Sequence record: NC_031127.1
Direction: 5' to 3' (one strand)
Length of the DNA stretch: 64,000 nucleotides
A model generated the notes under the pieces. That model was not told the DNA's origin and made no database searches. It saw only the letters and a list, made by a program, of their open reading frames with translations. Of this stretch, positions 1-27,700 are shown piece by piece; position 1 is the stretch's first letter, and each line of letters opens with the position of its first letter. The position numbers and the translations under genes are program-made.

Positions 1-2
1 CA

Positions 3-980: not shown

Positions 981-992
981 GAGGTAGTTATC

Positions 993-1988: not shown

Positions 1989-1997
1989 GGAACGGTC

Positions 1998-2927: not shown

Positions 2928-2940
2928 CGGAGTATCCATC

Positions 2941-4335
2941 ATGGGTCTGTATAGCAAACCCGCACTCGATTTATTGGGGGCGCTCATTAACCGGGACAAT
3001 CCGGGAGTAAAGACTCAGCTGTCGTCGTCCAACATCCTTGTGCTGGGTGGACCATTCACGACCAGTCTGGGCAACAGTGGCCGCAATACCCGTATCCAAC
3101 TGAACGGGGTTGTGGGTTCTGGCGTCAACGGAAAGATGGAATTTTTCTACGATCGTCTGAACTTAGGGGATTTGTTCAAGAACATCACCATTGTCTTTAA
3201 CGGTGATAACAAGTCGACGAAACTCAAAGATCTGCTACCGGCGTTGAATGCCCAGTATGGGTTAAACTTGACGGCAGCAGATTTGGCTACGCCCGACACC
3301 GCTTTGGATTACGGGTACACCGCAACGCCCGTCACCTTTACCATGGCCGCAACGAGTCTGGCATACCGTGGCAGTTTGACGGCAACGTGGTCACGCAAAC
3401 CGGCCGGGGTCTATCCGAAGTCTGGGCCGGGTACAAAAACACTACTGATGGGGAGTCTGCAAGAAGGCTACTTTGGCGTGGTGTCGAAGGAAGAGATGAT
3501 GACATCCGGGGAGTTCTACGCGAACTTCTTTGATGGCAAAACGGTGAACGGGACAGGGGTGTTGGTTAACAACACGCTGTTCTGGTTGAAGTTTGCGCTG
3601 GACGGAAAGTTTGTCTTTGTCCCGAGCCACAACATGATTTCGAATATCAGCTGGGATACCTTGAACGCGTTTGGTGCGGCGAATGCCGATGCCAAATACC
3701 CGATGTTCGTGCAAAAAGACGACGACCAGTTCTTTTTCCAACTGCGATTACCACGATTCTCCACCACGTTTGAGCTTCCGCCGGATCGTACTGACCCTAC
3801 TTCGGATGCGAATCGTCTGTTCAACAAGGTGCATAAGCAGTCGTACGGTAACGGGGAGTGGGCCGCGTTGACCACCGTGGATATGGCAAACGCCTTTGTC
3901 TGGTGGAACAAGCGAAATGATACCACGGCACCGTTCCCCGTTTACGTCTCGGCGTTTAACCAAGTCTCGGTAAACAATGCCCCATCCGCCAGCCAACAAA
4001 ACTGGCGGCCAGTGTTGGAACTGGTCGATGCAGCTGACTATTTGATGCCGATGCGTAACCTCCAGGCAAAATTGGAAGTACCGGTACGGAACTTTGGGTT
4101 TATTCTCACGAGTATCATCGACTCGAGTACGTTGCAGGCGATGAAAAACATCTCGGCAACACTGGCACGCGGTGTACCGGCACCGGTGTTGTACCGCCCA
4201 ACGGCGAACATCTTCAAAGCAGCGCAAGACTTCCGAGCGACGAATCCGGTACGGTCGTTTGCATTCCGGTTCACAGCGACGTATGACAGGCGGACTGATT
4301 TAGCCACCACCAATGGCGAACTGAACGGCTTTTAA
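2941..4335 (+). CDS. Virion structural protein, paralog type C
   Basis: 464 aa. Starts MGLY..LI.RDNP, has EFFYDRLNL and GPG.K.LL.G...EGYFG, and ends DLATTNGELNGF. Confidence 0.8.
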   Translation: MGLYSKPALDLLGALINRDNPGVKTQLSSSNILVLGGPFTTSLGNSGRNTRIQLNGVVGSGVNGKMEFFYDRLNLGDLFKNITIVFNGDNKSTKLKDLLPALNAQYGLNLTAADLATPDTALDYGYTATPVTFTMAATSLAYRGSLTATWSRKPAGVYPKSGPGTKTLLMGSLQEGYFGVVSKEEMMTSGEFYANFFDGKTVNGTGVLVNNTLFWLKFALDGKFVFVPSHNMISNISWDTLNAFGAANADAKYPMFVQKDDDQFFFQLRLPRFSTTFELPPDRTDPTSDANRLFNKVHKQSYGNGEWAALTTVDMANAFVWWNKRNDTTAPFPVYVSAFNQVSVNNAPSASQQNWRPVLELVDAADYLMPMRNLQAKLEVPVRNFGFILTSIIDSSTLQAMKNISATLARGVPAPVLYRPTANIFKAAQDFRATNPVRSFAFRFTATYDRRTDLATTNGELNGF

Positions 4336-4346
4336 AGGATACGATT

Positions 4347-5363
4347 ATGTCATTAAAACTTTCGTGGGCGAACCCGAACACGGCAGCCACCGCGATCCGT
4401 ATCTATCGTAAAGATACGAACTTTGACTCCAGTTCCCTTCCCACGCCGCTGGCGGAGATTGGGCCATTGGAAACCAGTTACATCGACACCACGGCGGTCG
4501 AAGGCAACAGTTACTACTACGCCATCGGTACCGTGAGTGCGGTGGACGAGGTCTTTACCGCGACGCAGAAAATCGTTGCCACAGATAACCGTGGCGCGGG
4601 CCCGAACATCTTACTCGGTGGCGACACCATGCTTGGCTACTACGGTCAGATGTTAGTTGAAGACTTTGTCAACAACTCCACCATTCTGGCTGCGGCGGCA
4701 ACGCTTGCGGGATTGCCAACGGCGTTGGTATCGCCGAACTGGCACAAGTTTATCCGTAACGGAAAAATCTTGTACTTACCGGACACCAACTTCGGTAATA
4801 CTGATTACCGCTATCTGTACCAAGCGGGTTTTGTCCACGGTATTGATGCGAACGGACCGGCAGGCTTCGCGACGACGGGCCTGACACCAACGAAACAGTT
4901 GCGCACTTTTGTGCTGAAAGGTCAGACGTATAAAATCCGACTGATGCGTGGTTGGAGCGATGGTCCAGAAACGGATATCTCGGCGTACAACGGCGCGGCG
5001 GCTAACCACGATAACGTGGCGAATACCAAAGACAACGAATTCAACGACTTGGTTTACGCGTTGAATAAGTTCACGCCGTTGAAACAACGTACCCCTAACT
5101 TCATCAATCTGGAGTGGGATAAATTTGTCGGTGCGCCTACTACCAACTGGAGCAGCTCCGAGGCCCTGAGTGCCATGATTGCACAGTTCCGCATTGTGAC
5201 TCAGGAGCGCTGGCCGGGCGGCAGTGTATTATCCCGTGGCCAACGTGAAGTGACTTGGGGTCAGTATGCCTCACCACATTCGCGTGCGCATGTGTCGAAC
5301 ATCAGTTCCTCCGGGGTCACGCAAACGCTGATCTGGTTGCCAGTTATCGAACTCGTGGATTAA
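4347..5363 (+). CDS. Virion structural protein, paralog type A
   Basis: 338 aa starting MSLKLSWANPN. FN3-like N-terminus, WHKFIRNGKILY, C-terminal W.PVIELV. Confidence 0.8.
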   Translation: MSLKLSWANPNTAATAIRIYRKDTNFDSSSLPTPLAEIGPLETSYIDTTAVEGNSYYYAIGTVSAVDEVFTATQKIVATDNRGAGPNILLGGDTMLGYYGQMLVEDFVNNSTILAAAATLAGLPTALVSPNWHKFIRNGKILYLPDTNFGNTDYRYLYQAGFVHGIDANGPAGFATTGLTPTKQLRTFVLKGQTYKIRLMRGWSDGPETDISAYNGAAANHDNVANTKDNEFNDLVYALNKFTPLKQRTPNFINLEWDKFVGAPTTNWSSSEALSAMIAQFRIVTQERWPGGSVLSRGQREVTWGQYASPHSRAHVSNISSSGVTQTLIWLPVIELVD

Positions 5364-5372
5364 GAGGTTACA

Positions 5373-6257
5373 ATGGGTATTAAATTAGATTGGGTGGATC
5401 AGTCTGCTCAACAACTCACCGCGATTGAGATTTATCGTAGCGCCACACCAATCTCTACGACTAACCCCGGTACACCGATTGTGACGTTGCCGGGTAACGC
5501 AACGAGTTATGAAGACAACACCGTCAAAAACAAATCGCGTTATTACTACCGTATTGCCGCAGTGAAGGGTAGTGATAAAAGCTTCTCGCCGAATCAACTC
5601 ACCGGCTACTTCGCGGAAACCGGACCCGGCCGTGCTACCCCGATGCGCGGGGACTGGAACGCGGGCTTTATGGATGTACTGCCGATGAACGATTTCGTCA
5701 GTATGTCATCGTTGTTTACTAAGCTCCCCGGTTTGGCGAAATACGGCGCGGTCGCAAACACTATCCCTAGCTGGTACAAGATGTGTTATCAAGGCAAAGT
5801 ATTATTTGTGCCCAGCGCGGCGATCACCAATATGTCTTGGAACGAACTGTACGCGGAGAAAGCCATCTTTGGGGAAGAAAGTACCGCGACGTTACCTAAC
5901 GGCACCTTAGCCAGCGGGAAGCTGACGGTGGAAATCGGCGGGTTGAACTATATCGTTCGCTGCCCGAAACTCTCGCCGGTGGCGTACAGCAACTACGTTA
6001 CCCTGCAAGAGCAAACGGTGGATAGCGAGTGGCGTGATACCGTCAGTCGTCTTGCGCAGCTGTCGCTTGAGCCACAGGCCGGGGCCAAAACCCGCTTGAT
6101 GGACTTGACAGGCGCTCCGTTTATCGCGGTAGGTGGACATCTTCAAAACGCCACCCAACACACTGCGATGCTGACCGCGGCCCCAGGGGCCTTGTCGTAC
6201 GGGGGTGTTAACAACCGTTATGCTATTGGGTTGATTCTTGAACTCGTCATGCCGTAA
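5373..6257 (+). CDS. Virion structural protein, paralog type B
   Basis: 294 aa starting MGIKLDWVDQ. Contains AIEIYRS..NPGTPI, GPG...RGDW, and ends LELVMP. Confidence 0.8.
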   Translation: MGIKLDWVDQSAQQLTAIEIYRSATPISTTNPGTPIVTLPGNATSYEDNTVKNKSRYYYRIAAVKGSDKSFSPNQLTGYFAETGPGRATPMRGDWNAGFMDVLPMNDFVSMSSLFTKLPGLAKYGAVANTIPSWYKMCYQGKVLFVPSAAITNMSWNELYAEKAIFGEESTATLPNGTLASGKLTVEIGGLNYIVRCPKLSPVAYSNYVTLQEQTVDSEWRDTVSRLAQLSLEPQAGAKTRLMDLTGAPFIAVGGHLQNATQHTAMLTAAPGALSYGGVNNRYAIGLILELVMP

Positions 6258-6266
6258 GGAGGGCAC

Positions 6267-7799
6267 ATGGGCTTATACGATCGTGATTCGCTGAGTTTAC
6301 TGTGTCGGCTCATCATGCGCGATAATCCCCAGCTTGCTGTAGCACTTGATCCGACCAAGGTGATGGTGCTCAGCGGACCCTTTACATCCGGTTTAGGTAC
6401 CAGCGGGCGTAATGCCCGCATTACCCTGAACGGACGGACTGGTTCAGGGATTGTTGGGAAAAAAGAATTCTTCTACGACCGCATCAACCTCGGTGCCTTA
6501 TTCAACGGCATTACCGTGGTGTTTATGGCGGCAGGCAGTGCCAAAACGTACGCCGATTTGTTACCGGCTCTCAATGAGCAGTATGGCATCACGTTGCAGG
6601 CTTCAGACCTCGCCAACGGTACCACCAAGCTGCCGCAAGCCTACACCCCTACACAGGTGACACTCACCATTGCCAGCACCTCACCGGCCTTTACAGGTAG
6701 CCTGACGGTCACCTGGACCCGAACGCCGGTAGGCACCTTCCCGGACTCGGGACCGGGCAGCAAGGTGATGTTGATTGGGGATATGAATGAAGGGTACTTC
6801 GGTTTAGTGTCCGAAGAGGAGCTGTTCAATGCCCCTGCATTGCATGCGAAGATAAACGAAGGCAATGCCAGCCCTGTCGGTACGGTTAATGCCATCCCAG
6901 CCACCCGCCACTGGTATAAGTTTGCCCGCGACGGCAAGATTGTTTATCTGGCCAGTTACAACCACATTAACATTCTCTGGCGGGATTTGTATACGCGTGG
7001 GGCAGTGTACGAAACCACCGTACCGCTCAACGATCATAAAGCCCCTGCCAGTTTGACACGCACGGTGCAGAAGTTAGCAATGCGGAAAGTGGAGAGCGGA
7101 CGGGAATGGTATTTGTCGCCATGTATGCCACGTCTGTCCGACCAGACCTCTTGGGACTATAGCGCCATTAACCAAACGCCCGACCCAACGGGTGACGTTG
7201 CCCGGCTGTTTATGAAAGTGGCAAATGCGGGAGGCTACGCTACCGGGGAATGGGACGTTCAGTCCATCGACGCCAACGGTTACTGGCAGTCCACGGCTTC
7301 TAAGTCTGACCCAGCAAAAGCCTTCGGCAGCAGCATGGTCGGTTGGAACCAGGGGATGTACGACATGCTCACCTTCACCGGGGGCTGGCGGCCGATGCTG
7401 GAGCTGATTGATCCGGCCGTTGTGGGTTTACCGTTAGAAAACTTCGTCGGTACCCCAGAGGGGGTTCTGCGTAAACCGTTGGTCACCATTAGTCCAGACA
7501 CCGGTGATATCCTGCTGCTGCTGTCGGACGTCGCGTGGGAAATCCAGGGGGCGTTGAAAAAGCCACAGGTCTCAATGTTACCCTCTCCACTGCTGAATGT
7601 CAGAGAGATAACGGCACGCGTAGCAGCAGAAACCGATCCGCTTGTGCTGGACTTTGTTACGGCACCTCTCCTGAGTGTACGGCAGACCAGCTGGCAAAAC
7701 GTATTGCGAGCACCGCAAGCACAACTTGTTGCGGAATACAAAGCATCGACAGTTGTTAATCTCGCGACTGCGAACGGTGAACTCGACGGCTTTAAATAA
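6267..7799 (+). CDS. Virion structural protein, paralog type C
   Basis: 510 aa starting MGLYDR. Contains EFFYDRINL and PDSGPGSK, and ends NLATANGELDGFK. Confidence 0.8.
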   Translation: MGLYDRDSLSLLCRLIMRDNPQLAVALDPTKVMVLSGPFTSGLGTSGRNARITLNGRTGSGIVGKKEFFYDRINLGALFNGITVVFMAAGSAKTYADLLPALNEQYGITLQASDLANGTTKLPQAYTPTQVTLTIASTSPAFTGSLTVTWTRTPVGTFPDSGPGSKVMLIGDMNEGYFGLVSEEELFNAPALHAKINEGNASPVGTVNAIPATRHWYKFARDGKIVYLASYNHINILWRDLYTRGAVYETTVPLNDHKAPASLTRTVQKLAMRKVESGREWYLSPCMPRLSDQTSWDYSAINQTPDPTGDVARLFMKVANAGGYATGEWDVQSIDANGYWQSTASKSDPAKAFGSSMVGWNQGMYDMLTFTGGWRPMLELIDPAVVGLPLENFVGTPEGVLRKPLVTISPDTGDILLLLSDVAWEIQGALKKPQVSMLPSPLLNVREITARVAAETDPLVLDFVTAPLLSVRQTSWQNVLRAPQAQLVAEYKASTVVNLATANGELDGFK

Positions 7800-7811
7800 G
7801 AGGATTTGTAA

Positions 7812-8807
7812 ATGGCCTTAAAACTAAAATGGAAGAACCCGAATGTCGGGGCGACCACCATTGACATTTATCGTGGCGATACGATTAACGTCAGTCTCAC
7901 CACACCACTGGTGACATTAACGAACGGCGAGCTGTCGTGGGTAGATACGACGGCATTGTTTGGAAAAACGTATTACTACGTCTGGGCCGTGAATACCGCA
8001 AACGACCGCGTAGTCAGTCGCCCACAGAAAATTGAGGTTAACGACCGTAAAGGCCCTGGACCCAACTTGCTGTTGCATGGTAACGAAGGCTACGGTTTCT
8101 TTGGGGTGGTTCCAGCCGCAGATTTTGTTAACAGCGGCGCTATCTTGGCCGTAGCGAAAAATCTCAGTGGTGTCCCACAAGCCACCGTGTATCCGACTTG
8201 GTATAAGTTCATTCGCAAAGGCAAGGTTCTGTTTGTACCAAACCAAAGCTTTGGCGATACCACTTGGCAAGCACTGTATAACGCGGGCTTTGTTTACGGG
8301 GTTAACAATACGGGACCGGGCGGTGCGGGAACCGTTAACCAATTAACAACGTTTGAACTGAACGGCGACCTGTTCTTAGTCCGGGCAACAAAAGCGTTTC
8401 CTGAGGAAGTGCCGTGGACGGACGGACTGGGTTCGTACGATCTTGATACCATGCCTGTGATGGCAAATGTGTACGCCGAATACGAAGACCTGCTGTATCC
8501 GATGGCCGCACACTCCCCGCTGCGTAAACGGATGGTAACGGTTGGAGATGAAAATCTCAACAGCGTCCTACCGCCCCTGTATAACACCGTCTCTCGTACT
8601 GTGATTGGGGTCTGCTGCCAGGACTACAACAACAACTTAGTGCTCCAGCGCGGGGTTGGCTATAACTCATACGGCCAATCCTCACACAACCGCAACACGC
8701 TGCGTGCCTGCAACCGTCGTACCAAGACCGATACCTGCGTCTGGTGGCCGGTGGTGGAATACATTGGGCGTGTAGGTGAAGTAGACTTGACAAAATTAGG
8801 AGTGTAA
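7812..8807 (+). CDS. Virion structural protein, paralog type A
   Basis: 331 aa starting MALKLKWKNPN, with GPGP and WYKFIRKGKVLF. Confidence 0.8.
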   Translation: MALKLKWKNPNVGATTIDIYRGDTINVSLTTPLVTLTNGELSWVDTTALFGKTYYYVWAVNTANDRVVSRPQKIEVNDRKGPGPNLLLHGNEGYGFFGVVPAADFVNSGAILAVAKNLSGVPQATVYPTWYKFIRKGKVLFVPNQSFGDTTWQALYNAGFVYGVNNTGPGGAGTVNQLTTFELNGDLFLVRATKAFPEEVPWTDGLGSYDLDTMPVMANVYAEYEDLLYPMAAHSPLRKRMVTVGDENLNSVLPPLYNTVSRTVIGVCCQDYNNNLVLQRGVGYNSYGQSSHNRNTLRACNRRTKTDTCVWWPVVEYIGRVGEVDLTKLGV

Positions 8808-8810
8808 GGG

Positions 8811-9713
8811 ATGGGAATCACGATTAACTGGGATGACCAGACCGACCAAGCGTTAGATGCCATCGAGGTGTATCGTTCAACATCACCGATTGACATTAAC
8901 AATCCTGGTACCCCGATTGCGACACTGGCAGGAACCGCCCGCTCGTACGAAGATACTGCGGTGAAAGTGGGGAACACGTATTACTACTGTGTGGCGGTAA
9001 AGAAGGGAGAGAACCGTTCTTTCGGTGCGGTGCAGACCCAAGGCTATTATGCTAACTTAGGTCCTGGACCACAGCGGTTGTTACGCGGAGATTGGGTACG
9101 CGGCTACTTCGGTGAAATGTCTCCAGCTGACTGGGTGACCCCGGCGGATGTGGCTAACAAAATCAAGGATGCGCTCAAGTCCACCACGGGGATCACTTTC
9201 ACAACCAGCACCGGCTCTATCTGGTTCAAGTTTATCTATAAAGGGAAGATTCTCTTTATTCCGAACCTGAACCTGTTGAACAGCAGCAACTGGACAACCG
9301 GCTACAATGCTGGGTTTATTTTCGGCACTGACGATTTTGGAAACTCACCAACGGGTGTCCCCGGTGCCGTTAACCAACGTTGTGTGATTGAAATCGCTGG
9401 ACTTCAGTACATCGCTCGTGCGATTCGTCTGTCAGAAAAACCGACTACCCAATACCTGACCGACCAGCTGGACTTTAATGACAGCGAATGGAAGTCTACC
9501 TATGCACGACTGCGGGCCGACGGGTTAGCCATTACCGACCCAACAGTACAACCGCGAGTGAATGACTTGAGCAGTCTTAACAGCACAGGCAGCGCGCATA
9601 TGGCCGACGCTAACAACAGCGCCGCGGTTATTAGCAGCGCTCCTGAAACCTTGGGCAAAACCCCGAAAACTTCGGGTATTGGCTGGATGGTTGTACTCGA
9701 ACTGTTGCAATAA
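8811..9713 (+). CDS. Virion structural protein, paralog type B
   Basis: 300 aa starting MGITINWDDQ, with GPGPQRLLRGDW..GYFG, ending LELLQ. Confidence 0.8.
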   Translation: MGITINWDDQTDQALDAIEVYRSTSPIDINNPGTPIATLAGTARSYEDTAVKVGNTYYYCVAVKKGENRSFGAVQTQGYYANLGPGPQRLLRGDWVRGYFGEMSPADWVTPADVANKIKDALKSTTGITFTTSTGSIWFKFIYKGKILFIPNLNLLNSSNWTTGYNAGFIFGTDDFGNSPTGVPGAVNQRCVIEIAGLQYIARAIRLSEKPTTQYLTDQLDFNDSEWKSTYARLRADGLAITDPTVQPRVNDLSSLNSTGSAHMADANNSAAVISSAPETLGKTPKTSGIGWMVVLELLQ

Positions 9714-11444: not shown

Positions 11445-11490
11445 TAAAAAGGTGTACCGCTACCCTTCGGGGTAGCGGTATCCTTATTTT
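11445..11490. terminator. Bidirectional intrinsic terminator
   Basis: 11-bp stem taccgctaccc-ttcg-gggtagcggta flanked by A- and T-rich tracts, between convergent genes. Confidence 0.9.
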
Positions 11491-11510: not shown

Positions 11511-12221
11511 TCAGGCGTTTAACAGTGGAATCTGCGTAATCGGTTGACTTAACGGCTGCGGTTCCCAAGTGACCGTTACAGCGTTAAATGCACGCTTGAT
11601 GTTCTGGTAGCGCGCATTCACACAATGGGCGTGTTTCACATCCCAACGTTCATGCTCAGGAATCGCGTTTTCAATCTGTTCACGGAAGAACAGATAGTTG
11701 CGATTGTAGTTCAGCGTGACATCCGAAATTGACGGGTAGCTGTACTGATGCGGGTTATCGTTCTTATCGGCATACGACGGCCAGCCGAAGTTCTTCACCG
11801 CTTCGTAAAACGAGTTGGCGAGGAATGATTCGACCTTCATCATTTCCATAATCCGCAAGAACATCAAATCCGCAAACGGCTTGTCCGTTGCCCGTGACAG
11901 ATTGCCCGCCGGAGTATCCGGGTAGGGTACTGGGGACGGGGCTTTCTGATACAGCAGGTCGTGGATACAGGCAGCTGCCGCCCAAGGGCCATCAGGGTGC
12001 AGAATCGGCTGTAAGGCAGCTGGGATACTCGCCAAGTCCGTGACGAAGCCCGCGGGGGCGGTGACATACATCAGCGTGTCAGGATGAATACCAGAACGGT
12101 ACACCATGTCATCCAAGCCCGGATGGTCACGGTACAATGCCCTCAGCGTAAACGGTACCCGGAAGTCGTCTGTCAGAATGAACCACTGCTTATCTAACAC
12201 TTTATACTTCAACTCGTTCAT
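11511..12221 (-). CDS. DUF1353-family protein
   Basis: Motifs typical of DUF1353: P.GFVTDLASIP, AA.IHD.LY, AD..F..IM, Y.AV..FG. Confidence 0.75.
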   Translation of the reverse strand: MNELKYKVLDKQWFILTDDFRVPFTLRALYRDHPGLDDMVYRSGIHPDTLMYVTAPAGFVTDLASIPAALQPILHPDGPWAAAACIHDLLYQKAPSPVPYPDTPAGNLSRATDKPFADLMFLRIMEMMKVESFLANSFYEAVKNFGWPSYADKNDNPHQYSYPSISDVTLNYNRNYLFFREQIENAIPEHERWDVKHAHCVNARYQNIKRAFNAVTVTWEPQPLSQPITQIPLLNA

Positions 12222-12353
12222 GAAAGTGCCACCTTAACCATACTGAGCACCACCATGCCTATAATCGACCCCCACAACACATACGCAGGTGGATCATCCT
12301 CGGTAAAGAATTTTGTCGGTACAGAATTGTTCATGGTGATGCCCTTATGGTTA

Positions 12354-13039: not shown

Positions 13040-13696
13040 TTAGGCTACACCGTTATCCGCAGCAAGCTGCTTAACTGCGGTGAAGTCTTTTTGTTCCGTG
13101 AGGATACGGATGCGTTGTTTCAACACAGACATGACCATGTGCAGGTCATTGTCACGCGTGATGATTTCCGCATAGAGGGCTTTAACGTCCTCCACCGTCC
13201 ACGGCTCGATAGGCTCGTTGTTCAGCGTCATCCAGTACATCGGGTCAACCCCGGACTGCATGTAGCTTTGCATCGATTCGCGCGACTTCTCGTCAGCTTG
13301 GAACGTCTTGTCACGGAAGGTAATGGGTGCAAACCGTTCCGCGTTATACTTGTCGTTCAGTTTCGGATAAATCGCATTGACTTCCTGATAGAGGTAGTTC
13401 TCCGTCGAGGTCAGCGCGGTACGTACGTGGTCTAAATCAATCTCCAGCACGTCAGCAATAAACTCTTTGGTTTTCTTCATCAGGAATTCAATTTCAACCG
13501 GTGACAGGTCAAAGCCTTTGAGTTTCTCGCGGGCTTTCTTGTCACTCATACCGTTAATCAGATGGTAGTGCAGTAGCAGGCAGAACCCGATACGGTTTTC
13601 CATCTGGTCTTGGTATTCTTCCACGTAGTTACCGTAGCGGTCGATACGCGTGCCCCGTTCGAAATAACGGGCTTTTATTTCGTCGTTACTAAGCAT
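13040..13696 (-). CDS. DUF4376-like protein (phage tail-assembly-associated)
   Basis: The C-terminal half, FQADEKSRESM..W.T.NN....T.EDV.AL...I, matches the remembered DUF4376 pattern. Confidence 0.6.
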   Translation of the reverse strand: MLSNDEIKARYFERGTRIDRYGNYVEEYQDQMENRIGFCLLLHYHLINGMSDKKAREKLKGFDLSPVEIEFLMKKTKEFIADVLEIDLDHVRTALTSTENYLYQEVNAIYPKLNDKYNAERFAPITFRDKTFQADEKSRESMQSYMQSGVDPMYWMTLNNEPIEPWTVEDVKALYAEIITRDNDLHMVMSVLKQRIRILTEQKDFTAVKQLAADNGVA

Positions 13697-14232
13697 CCGG
13701 ATTCTCCTGCAATCCCAAGGTCAACCAGCAGACCGAAGTCAATGAACTGGAAATCATTTTCCAACTCTTCGCCCCAGAGCAGTTTGGCCTCTTCTGCTTC
13801 ATCACCCATCTCTTCCAGCGTCTTACGTGCCACTTCGAATTCGTGGTAGAACGCATCGGTCAGGTGTGTACCGCGTAATGCACGCACAGTCACACCAGGG
13901 AAGTTCAGGGCCAGTCCCACAACGTTGGTTGGGTCTGCATCACCGGTAGAACGGCGCAGTACCTGCAACTTGTGTTTTGGGAACGCCACCACACGTTTTT
14001 CGAAACCGGGATTACGTTTCTCGATTTCGACAACGGACTGGTGATCGTCTTCCACGCCCTGTAAAGGCAGGATGACATTCAGGCCATAACGGTTCAACAG
14101 ACGAATGGTGTCATCGTTGAAATCTTCACCCGGCACGATCGCATGGATGTTGTACAGCTTGTGTTTGCGAATGAACGCATCGACAAGGTGAACGTTACGC
14201 CGAGTAAAATTGTGAATCAGCAATGACTTCAT
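13675..14232 (-). CDS. Hypothetical protein in radical-SAM operon
   Basis: 185 aa with SD ggag located inside the upstream gene. Overlaps both neighbours. Confidence 0.75.
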   Translation of the reverse strand: MKSLLIHNFTRRNVHLVDAFIRKHKLYNIHAIVPGEDFNDDTIRLLNRYGLNVILPLQGVEDDHQSVVEIEKRNPGFEKRVVAFPKHKLQVLRRSTGDADPTNVVGLALNFPGVTVRALRGTHLTDAFYHEFEVARKTLEEMGDEAEEAKLLWGEELENDFQFIDFGLLVDLGIAGESGCLVTTK

Positions 14233-15541
14233 TCGAGGCTCCGAGTTCTAATTTAAGTTTATCTGCTTTCATGCGGTCACGCACGCAGCTCGCACAGTAG
14301 CACATGGATTTATCGTGCAGGTCGGCGACATTCGTGGTACCGGTTTTCTGATACCAGTATTCGGACACCAACAATTTCGCGGTCGTCCAACCACACTGGC
14401 GTCGCTCAGCATGGTACTCTTTACGCGCTTCCAGCTCGCCGTCACCGTTCTCGTAAGAAGCAGCCGCACAGCTACCGCACGAGTGTTTCATCGGGCAGCC
14501 TAAGCAGGTAGACGGGTAGTTGGTGTACTGCGTCTGAATTTCGTTCAGTAGTTTGTGACCGTCAATGTTCACAATCTCACGCCCACGCAGTTCTGCTACC
14601 GCTGAACGGGTGGTTACGGTTGACATGAAGCGGTTACAGCCGTAAATCTTACGGTCGAAGCCAAGACAGGTCATGTGGGTCAGCGTACCGCAGTAAGGAC
14701 GTACACGGTCTGGGTGCAGACGGGTTGCTTCATCGTCCAGCAACTTCTGACGCCAGTCCGGGTCCCATGTCGCCATGAAGTCCAGCCCATCAGGAATGAT
14801 GTGGGTCAGGATGTTACGTGGTGACTTGTGGTAGCCGTTGTCGACCCAGTAATCGATAACGTCAATCATCTGGTTTGCGATACCCAGAGCCATATCACGC
14901 GACAGAATGTCTTCGTACGTGACGTTACCGGAGATGGTACCACCGCCCGTTTCTTTAATCAGGTGAATCATGCTCTCGCCGTAACGAGGCAGGGTCTCAC
15001 CGGTAAAGGTGGCTTTGATACCGAGTTCTGCAATACCGACAGATTTCAGGTATTGGTAGCCGCGCATCGCCTGCTCGTACGAGCCTTCACGCGAAGTGGT
15101 GAAGATACGATAGCGGTCGTGTACTTCTGGCAGACCATCGATGGACACACCAATCGACAGACGGTCTTTCCAGCGTTCAATGATTTCTTTGCTGATAGGA
15201 CGGTCGAACAAGGTGCCGTTGGTAGAAATAGAGAATACGTACTGGCGGTTGTCGCGCGCCGCTAACTCTTCGGCTGTCTCAAAGACGGCTTTCAGAATCT
15301 TCGGCTGCATAAACGGCTCACCCCCGATGATGTCGATAATGATTTCGGCATCTTCGATGTGACGGTCGCGGTCAAAACACGCATGAATAAAATCGACAGC
15401 GTCATCCACTTTGTTGTTGCGCGGATACTTACGTTCGTAGCAATACGAACAGTCGAGATTACAAGACAGGTTAGTTACGACCTGATACGTGAGTGTGGGG
15501 CGCTGTTTACGCGTCTGCGATGAAGATCGTTCTTCACTCAT
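14195..15541 (-). CDS. Radical SAM enzyme with SPASM domain (peptide maturase-like)
   Basis: CNLDCSYC (CxxxCxxC) and GGEP. C-terminal Cys set: C-x7-C..YGC, then CLGCPMKHSCGSC..C, plus an extra CYCASC. Confidence 0.92.
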   Translation of the reverse strand: MSEERSSSQTRKQRPTLTYQVVTNLSCNLDCSYCYERKYPRNNKVDDAVDFIHACFDRDRHIEDAEIIIDIIGGEPFMQPKILKAVFETAEELAARDNRQYVFSISTNGTLFDRPISKEIIERWKDRLSIGVSIDGLPEVHDRYRIFTTSREGSYEQAMRGYQYLKSVGIAELGIKATFTGETLPRYGESMIHLIKETGGGTISGNVTYEDILSRDMALGIANQMIDVIDYWVDNGYHKSPRNILTHIIPDGLDFMATWDPDWRQKLLDDEATRLHPDRVRPYCGTLTHMTCLGFDRKIYGCNRFMSTVTTRSAVAELRGREIVNIDGHKLLNEIQTQYTNYPSTCLGCPMKHSCGSCAAASYENGDGELEARKEYHAERRQCGWTTAKLLVSEYWYQKTGTTNVADLHDKSMCYCASCVRDRMKADKLKLELGASNEVIADSQFYSA

Positions 15542-16431
15542 TTGATTACCTCATTGCGATGTTTGCGAGCGTGGATCGTGCGATTGATGTAACGGTAGGC
15601 TTCTTGCCCAATGACTTTCGCCAGCATGTTACAACCGCTATCGATTTCCATCTCGACATCCATCGTGTAGCCGATAGACGCATCGGAGTCCAGACGAACC
15701 AGACCGCTGCACGCGTTGCACGACTGCTCAAAGAACTTGCTGATGGAGAACCCAGTTGAGCCATTGTTCATGACATTCAGGCGTTCAATCTGGTCTTCCA
15801 TTTTGTTGTAGCCGAACATGAAGTTCATCACCAAATCTTGGTTCAGAGGTTTCTTCATGCGGTTGTCCAACAGCAGCGTCATGTCTTTGAAGCCGTAGTG
15901 GTGGAGTGCGCGGTGTAAGTCCAGCAGGTCAGTGTGCCAATATTTATCAGCCAACTGCTCACGAGTCACCACGGCCCACGTATGGACGTTGTTCAGCGCA
16001 GCCATCACTTCGAAGGCTTCGAATGCACCATCTTCAACGACACGCCAGAGCGGACGTTCGCTCTTTTTGTATCCATCGAACGACACACAGATACGGTTAA
16101 ACTGTTGCAGCATCGGGAGATGTTCCAGACGCATTTTCAGACCGTTCGTGTACAGCTCGTGAGTGAGATGTGGATAACGGGCTTTGACTTCGGCCAGCAA
16201 TGGCTCAATCTTCCGGGTCGCCATTAATGGCTCACCACCCGTCCAGTTCATCCCTTGTAAAGTCGGGTACTTCTCCAGTTGTTCAAACAGCGCTTCACGC
16301 TGAATTTCCCGACCAACATCTTTTGTGTCCATGTAATACGCTCCGCCGCAGAAACTACAATCCAAATTACACTTGGACGTCGTCACTATCGACAGCTCGG
16401 TAGGGGGACGTATTTGTGGTGCATCGGTCAT
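15538..16431 (-). CDS. Radical SAM enzyme (short, possible Twitch-like C-terminus)
   Basis: CNLDCSFC, WTGGEPL, TNG and SFDG motifs, with C-terminal CNAC..GC. ATGA overlap with the downstream rSAM gene. Confidence 0.9.
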   Translation of the reverse strand: MTDAPQIRPPTELSIVTTSKCNLDCSFCGGAYYMDTKDVGREIQREALFEQLEKYPTLQGMNWTGGEPLMATRKIEPLLAEVKARYPHLTHELYTNGLKMRLEHLPMLQQFNRICVSFDGYKKSERPLWRVVEDGAFEAFEVMAALNNVHTWAVVTREQLADKYWHTDLLDLHRALHHYGFKDMTLLLDNRMKKPLNQDLVMNFMFGYNKMEDQIERLNVMNNGSTGFSISKFFEQSCNACSGLVRLDSDASIGYTMDVEMEIDSGCNMLAKVIGQEAYRYINRTIHARKHRNEVIK

Positions 16432-16449
16432 TGCAGATTGCTCCAGTTT

Positions 16450-17328
16450 TTAATAGATCGCGAAAAGGGGGTCGTCCTCAAACTTCGCGCCCACATCCAG
16501 AAGGAAATCGGAGTGGTAGGCATCGAGTATTTGATTCAGAACAGCCTGACGGTCGTTAATCCGTTTAAGATCATCGAGTGTCACGCTTCGCGACTTGATG
16601 TTTGAAACTGCCTTTTCTTCGTCAGCTGTTAAGGAAACCTTCGACAGAAGGAAACTTACCAGCTTGCTCAGGTCAGCCTCGGTACCCGGTGCTTCACCGT
16701 AACGCAATTGAACCAAGAACTGCATCCACGGTTTGCGGATACGGCGACTGATTTCATGTGGATCGGTAATCGCTTCGAACTGCCCATCTACCGCATTCCA
16801 GCGAAACTTGTAGCTATACGCCAGTAAGTCAGCCAGACAATGGATACCGAGCGTTTCATAACCTAAGATGTGATGGTATTTTTCCACACCTTTATATTCT
16901 TCCGTGCCGGTCGGTACTACGGTGTACCAGAACGGATTAGAAGACGGGTAGTCCCAGCTCCACTCGCGACGAACCATGGGAATGACGTCCAAATCCGCAA
17001 ACGGCGTGAAGATCATTTCCAAATCCATCGAGTGGTTCAGGACTGCATCAGTAAAGAAATACTTACCGTCAATCAGTCGGCCACTGGCGTTCAGCTCGCC
17101 TTCATTAAACTTCACATGCTGAACAGTGTGCTTACCGATGGAGTAGGTATTCTCTTCGGTGTACTGCTTACGTGTAATATCCCGCCCACGTACCTTAGGC
17201 CATTCGCCTGGCAGCATCGAGATAAGGCGTACTTCGTCAGCGATGTGTGCTTTCACACTGTCGTACGACGAAATGTGTAACGGGAAATTTTGCGTCGTGC
17301 GGTACGCCAAATGGAGGTCGTTCTTCAT
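16450..17328 (-). CDS. Hypothetical protein between Cys-rich peptides and radical SAM genes
   Basis: 292 aa ORF with SD aagga, co-oriented with short spacers. No motif recognised. Confidence 0.8.
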   Translation of the reverse strand: MKNDLHLAYRTTQNFPLHISSYDSVKAHIADEVRLISMLPGEWPKVRGRDITRKQYTEENTYSIGKHTVQHVKFNEGELNASGRLIDGKYFFTDAVLNHSMDLEMIFTPFADLDVIPMVRREWSWDYPSSNPFWYTVVPTGTEEYKGVEKYHHILGYETLGIHCLADLLAYSYKFRWNAVDGQFEAITDPHEISRRIRKPWMQFLVQLRYGEAPGTEADLSKLVSFLLSKVSLTADEEKAVSNIKSRSVTLDDLKRINDRQAVLNQILDAYHSDFLLDVGAKFEDDPLFAIY

Positions 17329-17346
17329 GGTTTCTTTATCCTTACT

Positions 17347-17556
17347 TTATCGGTTACCCGCGCCGTAACTGCACCCACCACTGCACGACCAGCTACAGCT
17401 ACCGTTGCAGTTATAATGCGAGAGTGGAAGCCCAGCAAGGTTGTTGGTCGAACTGACCGTGCCGCGTGTGGCGATATAGTTATTGGCCTGTGCGGTCGTG
17501 ATGTAGCCTTCGACGTTCTGCACCCGATCGCGAATGTTTTTCAATGAGATTGCCAT
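17347..17556 (-). CDS. Cys-rich precursor-like peptide 3 (69 aa, 4 Cys)
   Basis: Leader MAISLKNIRDRV..VE and core NCNGSCSWSCSGGCS. SD gagga. Confidence 0.85.
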   Translation of the reverse strand: MAISLKNIRDRVQNVEGYITTAQANNYIATRGTVSSTNNLAGLPLSHYNCNGSCSWSCSGGCSYGAGNR

Positions 17557-17577
17557 AGGTCCTCACTCGATAGAGTT

Positions 17578-17970
17578 CTATCGACTGCCTGAACAGCCAG
17601 AGCATCCCGTACAACTTGAACTACAGGAACCGGAACAGTTACCGGAGCATGTACCCGAACAACCGGAGCACCCACCCGAACACGAACCAGAACATCCTGA
17701 GCACCCACTGGTACACCCAGCAGTACAGCTCGACGAACATGAGGAACCGCAGCCCCCTGATGCCGAACCGGAACAGCCACCTGAACAGCTAGAGCAACCC
17801 CAGCTACAGGTTCCGCCGCAATCGTAATGAATACGTCCTTGGCCGCCGAATAAGTCGACGTTATTGGTTGCCTTATTACGGATGTAGGTTTGTACCCCAC
17901 CTTCCGTTTTTAAGGAGTTCGCTTCGATCACTGCAATGCGATCCGCGATGTTTCGTAAGTTGATAGCCAT
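17578..17970 (-). CDS. Cys-rich precursor-like peptide 2 (130 aa, 20 Cys, CxxxC/CxxC repeats)
   Basis: Leader MAINLRNIADRI..IE, followed by an ~80-aa core almost entirely C/S/G/T. SD ggag. Confidence 0.9.
   Translation of the reverse strand: MAINLRNIADRIAVIEANSLKTEGGVQTYIRNKATNNVDLFGGQGRIHYDCGGTCSWGCSSCSGGCSGSASGGCGSSCSSSCTAGCTSGCSGCSGSCSGGCSGCSGTCSGNCSGSCSSSCTGCSGCSGSR
17581..17820 (-). repeat. Degenerate Cys-x2/x3 coding repeat
   Basis: Recurrent tgt/tgc codons every 9-12 nt encoding CSGSC/CSGC units. Confidence 0.85.
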
Positions 17971-17979
17971 TGTTTCTCC

Positions 17980-18369
17980 CTACTGTGGACCAGAGCAACC
18001 AGAGCAACCGGTGCAGCTGGAAGAACACGACCCGGCGCAACCACCGCCACACTTACCACTGCACGAAGACGCACAGGTACCTGAGCAACCTGAACAACCC
18101 GAACACCCACCGCCGCAGTTAGAAGAACAGCTACCCACGCACGTAGAAGTACAGGTTCCTGCACAGCTAGTACAGCTTGCAGAACACCCGTTAGAACACG
18201 ACCAGCTACAACTGCCGCCACAATCCAGACGGGAGGGAGACCACCCACTGAACGAGTCCGCAGCGTTGTAAGCTTTCGATGCAACCTGCCCGTCTACACG
18301 AGCCCCGGTAGCATAGTTTGCTTCCACATTGTTAACGCGGTCGCGTATGTTTTTCATTGAAATCGCCAT
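17980..18369 (-). CDS. Cys-rich precursor-like peptide 1 (129 aa, 21 Cys, CxxxC/CxxC repeats)
   Basis: Leader MAISMKNIRDRV..VE, followed by an ~80-aa C/S/G/T core. SD aagga. Confidence 0.9.
   Translation of the reverse strand: MAISMKNIRDRVNNVEANYATGARVDGQVASKAYNAADSFSGWSPSRLDCGGSCSWSCSNGCSASCTSCAGTCTSTCVGSCSSNCGGGCSGCSGCSGTCASSCSGKCGGGCAGSCSSSCTGCSGCSGPQ
17983..18222 (-). repeat. Degenerate Cys-x2/x3 coding repeat
   Basis: Same pattern as 17581..17820. Both cores end in CSSSCTGCSGCSG. Confidence 0.85.
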
Positions 18370-18434: not shown

Positions 18435-19640
18435 TTATCGTGAACCCGCTTCGGCTTGTACGTCGTCGCGAGAAGTCAGGCTGCTGTTGACGTGTACTGC
18501 CGCCTGAACCACACCGCCGTACTGCTTGTGGAGATAGTTCGGGTGTGGGTTATCTGCGTTAACGTGGTTCTGGAGATTCTGCGACAGGGTGTTAATGGAG
18601 TTCTGCAATCCAGCAACTTGCTGTTTCAGTGCATTCAGCTGACCAGAGAGATCCTGAATCTGCTGCTGCGTATCGGAACCGGCGGATTCCAAATCACTGA
18701 TGCGCTGCTTGAGCCCATTGATGACTTGGTTCTGGTCATTGATCATCTTCTGGAGTTGTAACACCAGAGAGTTCAGGTCGGCCTGTTGTAACGCCGCCTT
18801 TTGGTAGTTCAATGCCACCGAATTCAGTTGGTCATTCCACGAACCGAGTGCACTGACCACCGCATCGATACGCGCACCGAGTGCTGTGTCCGCTGCTTTC
18901 AAATTACCGATGTCAGCGAGGACAGCGTTAATGGCAGTCTGAACCGTTTGAATCAGCGCGCGAATTTCGGTTTCAGTGAGACCGTTCGCCTGATGAATAT
19001 CCAGTGCGTGAACATTACCTTTGGCATCGATGTGCGATTGTAGCGCCGCCATCATCTGGGTTTGCATGTCAGACATGGCTGCCAGAATCTGCTGGAGCTG
19101 AACTTCGTTACCGGAGTTAATCGCATCGGTCATCAACGCGAGTTGCGTAATGATGTATTCGAAACCAAACAGGTCGCCGAGGTCTTTAAAGGCCGGAGCC
19201 GCTGCAAAGGTATCCGGGACATTACGCAGGTCAGCGAAGTCAACTTTGCGGTCTTCAAGGTTGGCATCAGCCAACGCCTGTTTAATCGCAGAGATAACCG
19301 CCGACTGTGGGCCACCGACAACCTGTGCAAGACAGACGATATCGGTTGGGATAGCCGGGTTAGTGACGACCACACCCATACAGATTTCGCGGTTCTTAGC
19401 AAGCTTCATGTACGCCGGATGGATGTAAATCAGCTCGTAGTCGGTACCGCGTTTATAAATGGTGTTGGGTTGATTGGCAGGCCGCATACGGAACGTATCC
19501 GCAAAGAACGGCCCTGCTGGGAAAGCGAACGCACGGTTGACCTTCCCCCCACCTAACACAACCGGGACATTGACCGCGTTACTGGACGCAGCCCCTGTCA
19601 GGTCAAGTGGGTATTGAAATAGAATATCTGGCATGGCCAA
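18435..19640 (-). CDS. Tail-fibre-related virion protein with long coiled coil
   Basis: 401 aa. N-terminal YPLD.TG..SN..P.GPFF..L..G.DY module is shared with the three long fibre genes. Heptad-rich C-terminal half and HVNADNPH motif. Confidence 0.75.
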   Translation of the reverse strand: MAMPDILFQYPLDLTGAASSNAVNVPVVLGGGKVNRAFAFPAGPFFADTFRMRPANQPNTIYKRGTDYELIYIHPAYMKLAKNREICMGVVVTNPAIPTDIVCLAQVVGGPQSAVISAIKQALADANLEDRKVDFADLRNVPDTFAAAPAFKDLGDLFGFEYIITQLALMTDAINSGNEVQLQQILAAMSDMQTQMMAALQSHIDAKGNVHALDIHQANGLTETEIRALIQTVQTAINAVLADIGNLKAADTALGARIDAVVSALGSWNDQLNSVALNYQKAALQQADLNSLVLQLQKMINDQNQVINGLKQRISDLESAGSDTQQQIQDLSGQLNALKQQVAGLQNSINTLSQNLQNHVNADNPHPNYLHKQYGGVVQAAVHVNSSLTSRDDVQAEAGSR

Positions 19641-24759: not shown

Positions 24760-27700
24760 TTATACCCACTGACCGAAGTCAGTTCCATCTGTGGTGCGCT
24801 CAGCGTCCATCTTAGCCTGCAACACATTCCACAGCCTCGTGGTCATGTGTAGCGGGTTTATCCTTTTCGCTGTATAGCGGTCAGCGACAAACCACATCGC
24901 ATCCGCTACGGTATTTTCCGTTATCGTGGTGAGTAGTGTACCGCCCGCATCGTAGAGTTCGTACGTGAACTCCAGTTTCAACGGATCGGATGTGTACCCC
25001 GGAAGGTACGCCAGCTGAAGTTTCAAATCCCCACGACGGGCCGGTACCGGAACGCCGAGTTCACCGCCAAGGGATGAAGCGTAAGCCACATTTATCACCT
25101 GTCCACCAATGGCAAGCTGACGCACCGCATTGGCTTGTGTGCCTTTGACGATTTTCAGTTTGGCCACTTTGGAGGACTGCGGGAGATTGTACTCAACCAG
25201 CATGCCTGAGATAAGGAAGTTCGTGCCGTCAGAGCTGCCGGGTTTTCCGAACCAGTTGCCGTTCGTGTCGACAGAGTGAACCGACTGGAGCAGCGCATCC
25301 CGGTTAAACGCCAGTGGCAGGTAACCTGCGTGTGACGCATGGAAGGAACGACACCCCATCGGGACTAACTGGTATTCGGTATACCGCACGTCAGGTACGA
25401 ACACTCCCGCAGGTAACACCACGGTCGCATTCTTCACCGACGTGTTCGGCAGCACACCCGAATCGGCATACGACTCGAACAGCGAACGAAGGTACTGGTA
25501 GGCATCTTCAACAAACCCAATCCCGTCCAGCGGAGCCACAGACCCCAGAAGGCTACAGACACTCGTACCACCACCCAACGGTGGCAGTTCAAGTCCAACG
25601 AAGCCACCCATCAGTCCCCGGACATCAACATCGAACTGAATCTCCAGCTCATTAATGAGCAAAGAGCCATCGACGTCGTTTGGATTGCCCGCGAAGTACA
25701 CGCTGAACACCGACAGTTTCCGAAGCGTGACGTTGTACGAGTAACGCACCGCCAATCTCGGAGAGCCTGCTTTCAGTGTGGTCAAATCCATCACCCCCAA
25801 GACCGCTGACGCTTCATTCTTCCGAAGTGACGTCGTCTTGGAATACAGGATGTTGGATTCAAACGTTGGCAATGTCGTATTGACACCCGCATGGGTAGCG
25901 ATAGCGTTAACGTAGCCGTAATCCGGTTCAGTCACACCATCGAGTGGCACGCGCAGATAGCGGTTTCGGTAATCCGCAGGCACACTCCCAAGGGTTGGGC
26001 TGGCAAACAACAAGGCCGGTAACGGTTGTGCGAACAGTCCGTTGGTCTGGTATTCTTCGTACACTAACCCACCTTGGAACGTCGGTGCCCCATTCGCCTT
26101 CGGGTTGGATGGGGTGAACCACCATTGCGGTGTTTGCTCCGTCGTCTCCAGCAGCATGTACGCTTTTTTCGTGGTGCTGTTGCGTGACATCTGCGCCAGT
26201 CCGTACACCGTCTCGGCTCCGGCAGTGACTTCACCGTAGAGGGCCGATGGTGAATTGAACCGCAGTTTACCAATCGGCAACATCGCCAGATTATCCGTCA
26301 GTGTCCAATCACGGGCCGCTGGGATATGTTGTTGCAAACTGGCTATATGGTCGGACGCCTCGTTGGAAATCCCGTAATCGCGCATCATCGGGAAACTGAC
26401 GGTCGGGGTAGTGATGCCGCCCGCAGGGACATCAACCACACCAATCAAGGCGGTTTCCGGTGAAACCTCATTTGTCGGTTGCGGTTCAGCACGACTGTAC
26501 ATGGATTGAGTTACCATGTTCAGATACAGGAAGTGACGATTACCGAACGTTGGGGTCATGAACTCCCCAAGCTGGGTGATCGGCGTCCCGACGTCACTGC
26601 GGTAAATCGGCAGAGATTCGTCATAAACCTCAAAGGCCATCGCCGCAGCTTTCGTCGCGTCATTGCAGTCCGCACGAATCCCCAAGCAGGCAGATTGTTT
26701 TGCGGAGTCCACATCGACTTCCAAGAAGAACGGCGAGTTGCCCGTCCCCACTTCCTGACCATCCAGATAGACCGTCACCTTACCACCCGCCACGATATAC
26801 AGCCTCAGCGTTCCTGTGTACGATTTTAAGCGTAGTTTGGACAGCAGAGAGATAACGGACAGGTTACCCATCCCATTGGCACTCAAGCCGATAGGCGTCG
26901 CTTTTAAGGCGAAGTTGGGTTTGGAGGAAATGGCGGAGAAGTCAAAGTTCGCTGCGGTGTTCTTCACCGCAGGCGTCCAGTTACGCTCCATCGTGTTGTT
27001 CGGACTGAACCAGTTGAACATCGGGGTGGTTTCGAGGTTAATCGACCCACTTACCTTCCCCTCAGCCCGGTCATTCCCCCGCAGATAGAAATACTGGAGG
27101 TCTTTGACTTGAAGGATACGGCCAGATGCAACCGACCACGTTGAAGCATCGATGATGGAGAAATCTGTTGACACTCCGGTTTTCACCGACTTCAACGCAT
27201 CACTAATCGCATCCAAACGATCGCTCAAGCGCTTCATGACGTTCGGTGTCACACCTTTACTGCCGGACAGACCATCGTCCAAATCGGTGTACCGTCCCAG
27301 ACCCTCAGTGGCGTTCGTTGCCAGTGGCAAGTTTAAGGATGCAAATGTGTGCTTGTGTCCTTTATCACTCAACCCATCCATTGCGGTAGATTGGTCAGCA
27401 GAGACCGGTTTGTTGACGTCAGCAGTGTTATCTGCTTGGCTCAGACCAATATCTGACTTGGTCATCACACGCGCCCCGTCGTCCATTGGTTTGGAGTTGA
27501 GCATGGTGGTTTTCGCCACATAGCCCGACGCCTTACCTTCATACGGCTGCAACGAGTCTGGGGTCGAAGCAACACCACTGACTTCGTCGCCCACACCCGA
27601 CTTTAACACCGCGGTACCTTTTACGGTGGTGGTGGCAGACGGTAGCGTCAGTGAGGCTTTAACCGGGTCGGCTTTTGAACCTTTACCAGTGACTGAAATA

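Follow-up and report, generated by a model that had tools for sequence, protein, structure and literature searches.

A two-enzyme radical-SAM cassette in the tail module of Erwinia phage Huxley and its possible role in tail-fibre maturation

Results

A stretch of 64,000 nucleotides from sequence record NC_031127.1 (the window, to which all positions refer unless a locus is named) contains a cassette of eight minus-strand genes at 13040-18369, which encodes three cysteine-repeat proteins and two radical S-adenosylmethionine (SAM) enzymes and whose possible role in tail-fibre maturation is considered here. Over its 5,330 bases, the cassette region shows 100% identity to Erwinia phage vB_EamM_Huxley (NC_031127.1, 240,761 bp), a phage of the genus Machinavirus and, in current taxonomy, of the family Chimalliviridae. 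An earlier note, made from the sequence alone, had described the genes as co-oriented, tightly packed, bounded by terminator hairpins and situated between tail genes and an endolysin, and each of these points holds. The eight open reading frames (ORFs) abut or overlap and run in the order pepA (17980-18369), pepB (17578-17970), pepC (17347-17556), gp174 (16450-17328), gp173 or rSAM-1 (15538-16431), gp172 or rSAM-SPASM (14195-15541), gp171 (13675-14232) and gp170 (13040-13696); the two radical-SAM genes share positions 15538-15541, and gp172 shares 14195-14232 with gp171. Terminator-like hairpins on the minus strand lie upstream of pepA and downstream of gp178 (18420-18398), and just past gp170, the last gene of the cassette (13034-13013). 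Virion structural genes gp178 and gp179 flank the cassette upstream, and an endolysin with GH108 and PG_binding_3 domains follows downstream.

The PHROG matches of all eight proteins are either of unassigned function, such as phrog_8030 for gp174 (292 residues) and phrog_7988 for gp171 (185 residues), or are labelled 'radical SAM domain-containing protein'. Pfam recognizes Radical_SAM in gp173 (297 residues, 44.8 bits) and gp172 (448 residues, 56.5 bits) and DUF4376 in gp170 (218 residues; PF14301, 39.8 bits), and matches none of the other five, pepA, pepB and pepC included. Searches of the cassette proteins and flanks with Pfam, NCBIfam, PHROG and the annotation matched no peptidase, exporter or transporter family, in line with the earlier note.

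The three Cys-repeat proteins share one layout. In pepA (129 residues), an N-terminal part of about 49 residues precedes an 80-residue CXXX/CXX repeat that holds all 21 Cys, and the first Cys of the Huxley proteins lies at residue 50 or 51. pepB (130 residues, 20 Cys) is a paralogue of pepA, the N-termini of the two matching mutually (phmmer 1e-11 to 1e-12). The N-terminal part of pepC (69 residues) is paralogous to both and joined to the core in the same way, yet only four Cys follow. Successive Cys are spaced by 4 residues in 31 cases, by 3 in ten and by 8 in one, and the cores consist almost entirely of Ser, Gly, Cys and Thr, with no Asp or Glu. The repeat models TIGR04114 and TIGR04118 gave nil or faint matches. 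All three proteins match phrog_6085 (E 3.7e-29 to 1e-50; 1e-48 for pepA). All three genes lie 0.9-2.8 kb upstream of gp172 in the same operon.

The public record places two of these three genes on the wrong strand. RefSeq has pepC on the minus strand, but in place of pepB and pepA it lists gp176 and gp177, antisense ORFs on the plus strand (17534-17827 and 17948-18271). Could these plus-strand ORFs be the real genes, and the Cys-rich frames no more than non-coding low-complexity sequence? The RefSeq calls themselves speak for it, and the substitution pattern refutes it: between Huxley and phage pEa_SNUABM_6 the three genes differ at 126 sites, of which 17, 5 and 104 fall on the first, second and third codon positions of the minus-strand frames, and the amino-acid changes per gene number 3-9 in the sense frame versus 7-42 in the antisense frames. 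Together with a Shine-Dalgarno-like purine run upstream of each ATG, the paralogous N-termini and the phrog_6085 matches, this codon-position test identifies the minus-strand frames as coding. With orthologues conserved across four genera as well, we give the artefact explanation practically no credence.

The same genes are wrong or missing elsewhere in current phage annotations. SPN3US has three matching genes, for proteins of 130, 134 and 68 residues, two of them unannotated and the third replaced by the misframed gp166 (locus L002, 8410-8745). CR5 and Kwan also have three each, and their pepC orthologues carry just two Cys. Both of these orthologues (CR5, L167 4780-4989; Kwan, L168 4779-4988) have kept the N-terminal part and a Cys-Ser-Trp junction. 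The short paralogue may thus differ in role from the long ones, and since all seven representatives inspected carry the three genes, the clade-wide set of two long paralogues and a short one raises the possibility of a heteromeric fibre.

Of the two enzymes, gp172 is the more readily placed. It has a CxxxCxxC cluster motif (C27, C31 and C34) and a Cys-rich SPASM C-terminal domain as in the TIGR04115 family; the three motif cysteines are invariant among 21 homologues, as are Cys 284, 302, 346, 349, 355, 358 and 383, and C292 nearly so. The earlier note had suggested running both enzymes against peptide-maturase models, and the outcome was mixed. The best NCBIfam match of gp172 is indeed TIGR04115 (126.6 bits, E 1.6e-36), closely followed by PapB (NF047865; 125 bits, E 3.6e-36), and the models for SCIFF (TIGR03974; 61.3 bits), sactipeptide and anaerobic sulfatase maturases score lower; however, the curated cut-offs of TIGR04115, PapB and SCIFF are 350, 340 and 425 bits, respectively. 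Judged by sequence, gp172 is a distant relative of TIGR04115 and PapB, and with its scores under the cut-offs it is therefore a peptide-maturase-type enzyme on a branch of its own, outside every curated family. The closest solved structure by sequence is 5wgg (E 1.9e-12, residues 24-197, the radical-SAM core), which we take to be CteB. The entry itself was deposited as 'Radical SAM domain protein'.

For gp173, no NCBIfam family comes near its cut-off. An alignment with homologues from other cassettes shows a CxxxCxxC motif, a GGEP motif and three C-terminal Cys, without a full SPASM domain. In SPN3US (L002, 6346-7140) and CR5 (L167, 6022-6801), the start of the small radical-SAM gene is annotated downstream of the CxxxCxxC motif. 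In both, an in-frame, stop-free upstream extension carries this motif, and the deposited proteins therefore lack the cluster site on paper only.

Where do relatives of this cassette occur outside the jumbo phages? In protein searches with gp172, identity drops sharply from at least 49% within the jumbo clade to 31-39% in a second group, and the nearest relatives outside the clade lie in prophage or viral tail modules. A P2-like prophage of Campylobacter pinnipediorum (L005) has the gene order gpW, gpJ, gpI, a 384-residue protein, a 250-residue protein, the SPASM enzyme, a small radical-SAM enzyme, DUF1353, sheath and tube. The 384-residue protein carries the tail-collar fibre N-terminal domain Phage_tail_fib (PF12571; 138.8 bits, 1.8e-40) and ends in a Cys repeat of 43 residues. 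In a Deferribacter abyssi prophage (L004), a lambda-J-like gene is followed by a 302-residue protein, a 250-residue protein and both enzymes; about 100 terminal residues of the 302-residue protein form the Cys repeat, and it has a weak, sub-threshold match to the phage-tail repeat PF12789 (E 0.0078). Six further loci (L090, L091, L092, L171, L173 and L176) likewise encode, beside the enzymes, a long fibre-like protein ending in the repeat; the repeat-bearing fibre-like proteins of relatives range from 258 to more than 534 residues. Short, separate Cys-repeat ORFs adjoin the enzymes in L170 (76 residues) and L172 (116 residues). In L091, on a 284-kb viral contig, both enzymes are fused into one 686-residue protein with two cluster motifs (6134-8191), which is evidence for a functional coupling of the two. 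Two details of these loci are recorded as separate observations: in L171, a lambda-J-type viral contig, three successive radical-SAM genes (5306-8134) come after the Cys-repeat fibre and a gp174-like gene, and in L170 the 76-residue ORF (5021-5248) overlaps, in another frame, the end of a 577-residue gene with a weak Pfam match to T7 tail fibre.

The resemblance to the Huxley proteins extends beyond the repeat. A Cys-Ser-Trp sequence after the second Cys occurs in nine of 13 proteins compared, including all three from Huxley; the remaining four share a different junction. Junction and repeat of the Huxley proteins match the C-termini of fibre-like proteins, among them one with PF12571, and the Huxley N-terminal parts are similar to the stretches of fibre that come before the repeat in the fused proteins.

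These fusions bear directly on whether the cassette could be a classical pathway for a ribosomally made peptide that is modified post-translationally (RiPP), in which the roughly 49-residue N-terminal part would serve as a cleaved leader, with the cross-linked core set free as an antimicrobial or signalling peptide. The leader-like and core layout, the three paralogous N-termini and the relationship of gp172 to RiPP maturases all fit this idea, as does the existence of a canonical bacterial CXXX system with a 61-residue peptide in a Lachnospiraceae locus (L012). However, a strict RiPP pathway includes a leader-removing protease and a means of release or export, and neither family was matched in the cassette. 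Since, in addition, relatives carry the repeat on long fibre-like proteins and such cassettes are consistently located in tail modules, we regard a secreted RiPP as improbable. The earlier note had already preferred a radical-SAM system acting on CXXX-repeat proteins of a virion appendage to an antimicrobial, a preference that gains support from the tail-module relatives and the fibre fusions, and from the co-occurrence and the SPN3US virion proteomics described below.

An IMG/VR scan with the enzyme alignment retrieved 80 viral loci, and a co-oriented Cys-repeat ORF adjoins the enzyme in all 80 of them. With a stricter gene caller, the ORF is found in 74 of the 80, with a median gap of 400 bp and up to 92 Cys. 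A scan of genome contigs with the same alignment returned mostly distant radical-SAM families among the matches listed and so serves as background only: among these, four of 68 loci of unrelated radical-SAM enzymes have a Cys-repeat ORF. Upstream of 70 viral cassettes, the genes mostly match tail-fibre, tail-collar-fibre, tail and virion structural PHROGs. Most of the IMG/VR loci show a second architecture, in which a protein with an N-terminal domain of about 110 residues and a long repeat is accompanied by a helical protein of about 100 residues and a single SPASM enzyme. We strongly infer that the Cys-repeat proteins are the substrates of the adjoining enzymes.

The target family of such enzymes is already curated, as repeat model TIGR04114 and Pfam PF27846. 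A gut-phage locus with the single-enzyme architecture (L094) encodes a true TIGR04115 enzyme (497.8 bits) beside proteins with at least 62 Cys, and the canonical bacterial system of L012 combines TIGR04115 (521.8 bits) with TIGR04119, TIGR04116 and its 61-residue peptide. In Candidatus Termititenax (L007, 4405-6405; L009, 4671-6653), we also noted proteins of about 660 residues with about 120 Cys, adjoining a TIGR04115-like enzyme (275 bits).

Might the repeats simply bind metal? The Cys repeats would then be a metal- or iron-sulfur-binding fibre scaffold, with the radical-SAM enzymes serving another purpose or just assisting folding. The extreme Cys richness and the small residues between the Cys are compatible with this, and metal ions line some fibre tips. 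Metal binding was also raised by the authors of a study on the Cys-rich protein CrpA for their own protein (PMC13692751). A scaffold of this kind would leave the strict co-occurrence of the repeat with a peptide-maturase-type SPASM enzyme unexplained, and both the enzyme fusion in L091 and the finding that no metal-chaperone or cluster-assembly family was matched in the cassette argue against it; we judge it quite unlikely. The earlier note had also allowed for a 'metal-loaded' product, for which nothing speaks beyond composition.

Among the accessory proteins, gp174 is the most closely tied to the enzymes. Its homologues, proteins of about 216-290 residues, adjoin the enzymes in L004, L090-L092, L171-L173 and L176, as found by BLASTP for L004 (3e-12) and by phmmer for four loci (1e-8 to 9e-4); the protein in L091 also matches phrog_8030. 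Twelve family members were aligned, and a gp174 profile found only 46 clusters among 1.84 billion representatives. Two distant clusters that we looked up both adjoin a radical-SAM gene, one of them, L176, also a fibre-like protein ending in the repeat, and retrieval via gp174 yields the same set of loci as retrieval via the enzyme. The AlphaFold2 model of gp174 is of good quality (predicted local distance difference test score, pLDDT, 88.4; predicted template-modelling score 0.84), and its fold has no significant match in the PDB and matches only its own orthologue in BFVD. We propose that gp174, a conserved partner of the enzymes, acts in substrate handling or assembly.

The protein gp171 is an alpha/beta protein of the jumbo clade only, its homologues coming solely from contigs of about 240 kb. 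We do not claim a role as a flavodoxin-like electron donor, as its AlphaFold2 model (pLDDT 89) gave just weak Rossmann- or TIM-type matches in the PDB (E at least 1.6e-3, template-modelling score at most 0.41). Weak matches of gp170 are to tail-fibre and tail PHROGs (phrog_8169, phrog_1807 and phrog_2837), and a DUF4376 gene also adjoins the enzyme pair in L172. Beyond the endolysin lies gp167 (11511-12221, minus strand), a DUF1353 protein (PF07087, 59.6 bits) whose annotation is tail assembly chaperone. In the Campylobacter prophage, the gene right after the enzyme pair also encodes a DUF1353 protein, and gp167 may belong to the assembly set of the cassette.

Upstream, gp178 (18435-19640, minus strand) encodes a coiled-coil virion structural protein of 401 residues (phrog_2163 at 1.5e-110), on which the short Cys-repeat proteins may be carried. 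We rejected it as a general upstream partner of such cassettes: nine of 70 upstream neighbours match phrog_2163, yet a single-sequence phmmer search with gp178 reaches the jumbo clade only, and the extra matches probably reflect coiled-coil similarity. As a separate observation, gp178 is similar to the 1359-residue gp180 (24760-28839; phmmer 2.9e-7), which suggests a domain common to two tail proteins.

Within the jumbo phages, 67 phage records contain gp172 and 62 contain gp174 according to tblastn. The 62 records with the cassette are SPN3US-like phages of Erwinia, Salmonella, Escherichia, Cronobacter and Proteus, a synteny that the earlier note had asked to be traced. In SPN3US, the orthologues of gp178, gp174, gp171 and gp170 are gp167, gp165, gp162 and gp161, respectively. 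The main texts of the SPN3US papers do not mention gp161-gp167, and only supplementary Tables S1 and S4 are informative. SPN3US gp161-165 are shared with PhiEaH2 and CR5 and not with phiKZ, while the flanking gp167-171 have structural homologues in phiKZ (Thomas et al. 2016, PMC5105663 supplement); the cassette is thus an insertion into the tail/baseplate module of one clade. Mass spectrometry of SPN3US virions detected the tail proteins gp167-171, which are lost in tailless particles, and gp161-166 are not among the proteins detected in particles (PMC5105663 Table S4). The orthologues of the enzymes, gp174, gp171 and the DUF4376 protein thus act like factors that are not part of the virion.

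Could the short Huxley proteins also stay inside the cell once modified, as an assembly scaffold, a decoy substrate or a factor acting on the host envelope at lysis? With just 69-130 residues they are unlike the fused fibres found elsewhere, pepC retains the junction while losing most Cys, and in Huxley the cassette adjoins the endolysin. This last linkage is not conserved, because the endolysin of SPN3US is not adjacent to the cassette; moreover, the N-terminal parts of the short proteins resemble the pre-repeat segments of fused fibres, and the flanking genes encode tail proteins. We consider an intracellular role unlikely, if somewhat less so than the metal scaffold.

Discussion

We lean, if only slightly, towards the view that the cassette matures tail fibres by introducing radical cross-links, probably thioethers, into a domain of the fibre tip, rather than being a pathway to a secreted RiPP. 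The stricter claim, that phage radical-SAM enzymes covalently cross-link a Cys-repeat domain at the distal end of the tail fibre, and that this constitutes an undescribed post-translational modification of virions, appears possible to us, with the balance just against it.

In the maturation system that we propose, pepA, pepB and pepC would be short fibre-type proteins whose C-terminal CXXX repeat is the same as the terminal domain of full-length fibre-like proteins in other phages, and all maturation steps would take place inside the infected cell, before assembly. Using SAM-dependent radical chemistry, gp172 would cross-link the repeat covalently within the molecule through its Cys thiols, most likely by joining them as thioethers to carbons of adjacent Ser, Thr, Gly or Ala residues, and gp173 would carry out a second radical modification. 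A presenter or chaperone of the substrate is the role we envisage for gp174, because an N-terminal recognition domain would not fit into gp172. gp171, gp170 and perhaps the DUF1353 protein might help to attach the product to the fibre apparatus (gp178 and gp179). The fibre would end distally in a rod or knob that withstands both reduction and proteases.

How does this compare with known radical-SAM systems? PapB and CteB make thioether cross-links, PapB linking Cys to Asp or Glu, and CteB has an N-terminal recognition domain. gp172 and PapB, which acts on PapA to give freyrasin, are alike as SPASM enzymes without a long N-terminal extension and, presumably, in targeting repeated Cys motifs four residues apart; however, the product of PapB is a small peptide, whereas that of the Huxley-type system would be a phage structural protein. 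The closer parallel in this respect is archaeal: CrpC, a SPASM enzyme of Methanococcus voltae, installs ranthionine thioether links on the 29-kDa Cys-rich protein CrpA, and paralogous substrates in that system have an N-terminal part of about 47 residues in common (PMC13692751), much as pepA, pepB and pepC do. Unlike the Huxley cassette, CrpC/CrpA is a cellular system with 17-residue repeat units, an RRE (RiPP recognition element) is predicted for CrpC, and the paper makes no mention of phage or virus (PMC13692751). Thioether formation is the likeliest chemistry because PapB and CteB are the nearest characterized relatives and CrpC acts on a whole Cys-rich protein. The earlier note had called this chemistry established, which is correct for PapB, CteB and CrpC; for the CXXX repeats, our literature search found family models only and no experimental paper.

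The system nearest in gene content is the curated CXXX-repeat system (TIGR04114 to TIGR04119, PF27846), in which, as in Huxley, a SPASM radical-SAM enzyme lies beside Cys-Xaa-Xaa-Xaa repeat proteins. Its partner proteins TIGR04119 (CXXX_matur) and TIGR04116 (CXXX_rpt_assoc), both present in L012, match no Huxley cassette protein; in their place, Huxley has another complete radical-SAM enzyme and the gp174 family, and unlike that of the canonical system, the Huxley-type repeat is linked with tail fibres. That SPASM enzymes pair with CXXX repeats was thus already known, bioinformatically only. New with respect to the searched literature are the tail-fibre context, the fusion of repeat and fibre, and the combination of two radical-SAM enzymes with a gp174-like protein; our literature searches brought up no paper connecting radical-SAM enzymes with tail fibres, none on CXXX repeats and none on a radical-SAM-dependent covalent maturation of a virion protein.

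From the side of the phage, the cassette is reminiscent of fibre chaperones. These are non-virion genes directly after the fibre gene (the P2 gpG-type position; DUF1353 and DUF4376), needed for maturation of the fibre. In the Campylobacter prophage, the cassette directly follows the fibre gene, between fibre and sheath genes, and this is presumably the position of the fibre chaperone gene in phage P2. However, the known chaperones aid folding and perform no covalent chemistry, and the set considered here includes two radical-SAM enzymes.

Several points weigh against the proposed maturation system. The host bacteria are aerobes, so oxygen-labile enzymes must work in their cytoplasm. gp172 scores far under every curated maturase cut-off, and the cores of pepA, pepB and pepC contain none of the Cys-X3-Asp/Glu acceptor motifs used by PapB. 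For gp174 as a recognition protein of the PqqD or RRE type, the 12 family members gave no Pfam match at E <= 5 and the model gave no RRE-like fold match. The short Huxley proteins have no recognizable virion-attachment domain. The SPN3US proteome could not reveal the Cys-repeat proteins, because their genes are unannotated or misframed and hence not in the protein database; the cores are, besides, nearly devoid of tryptic sites. Finally, the literature search yielded no mass or structural datum for any CXXX-repeat product.

If the proposal is true, it would be of interest beyond Huxley, as tail-fibre tips set which bacteria a phage attaches to and must endure harsh surroundings. It would give the TIGR04114 to TIGR04119 family a biological role, making the 'CXXX-repeat RiPP' family largely a phage structural system and not a natural-product pathway, and would extend RiPP-type chemistry from small peptides to viral structural proteins. 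The modification would then be common to jumbo Chimalliviridae, P2-like and lambda-like prophages and many gut-phage contigs.

Other features of the window

No tRNA genes or Rfam families were found in the window. Between the endolysin and the DUF1353 gene, a minus-strand ORF for 38 residues with a hydrophobic stretch (12218-12334) may encode a lysis accessory protein. Between convergent genes, at 11454-11481, lies a strong hairpin that is GC-rich, has T-runs on either strand and resembles a bidirectional terminator. At the start of the window (1-9713), nine successive plus-strand genes are annotated as virion structural proteins or putative ones. By position, they match the SPN3US block gp138-gp154, for which a 17-member head paralogue family has been described (Thomas et al. 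2016).

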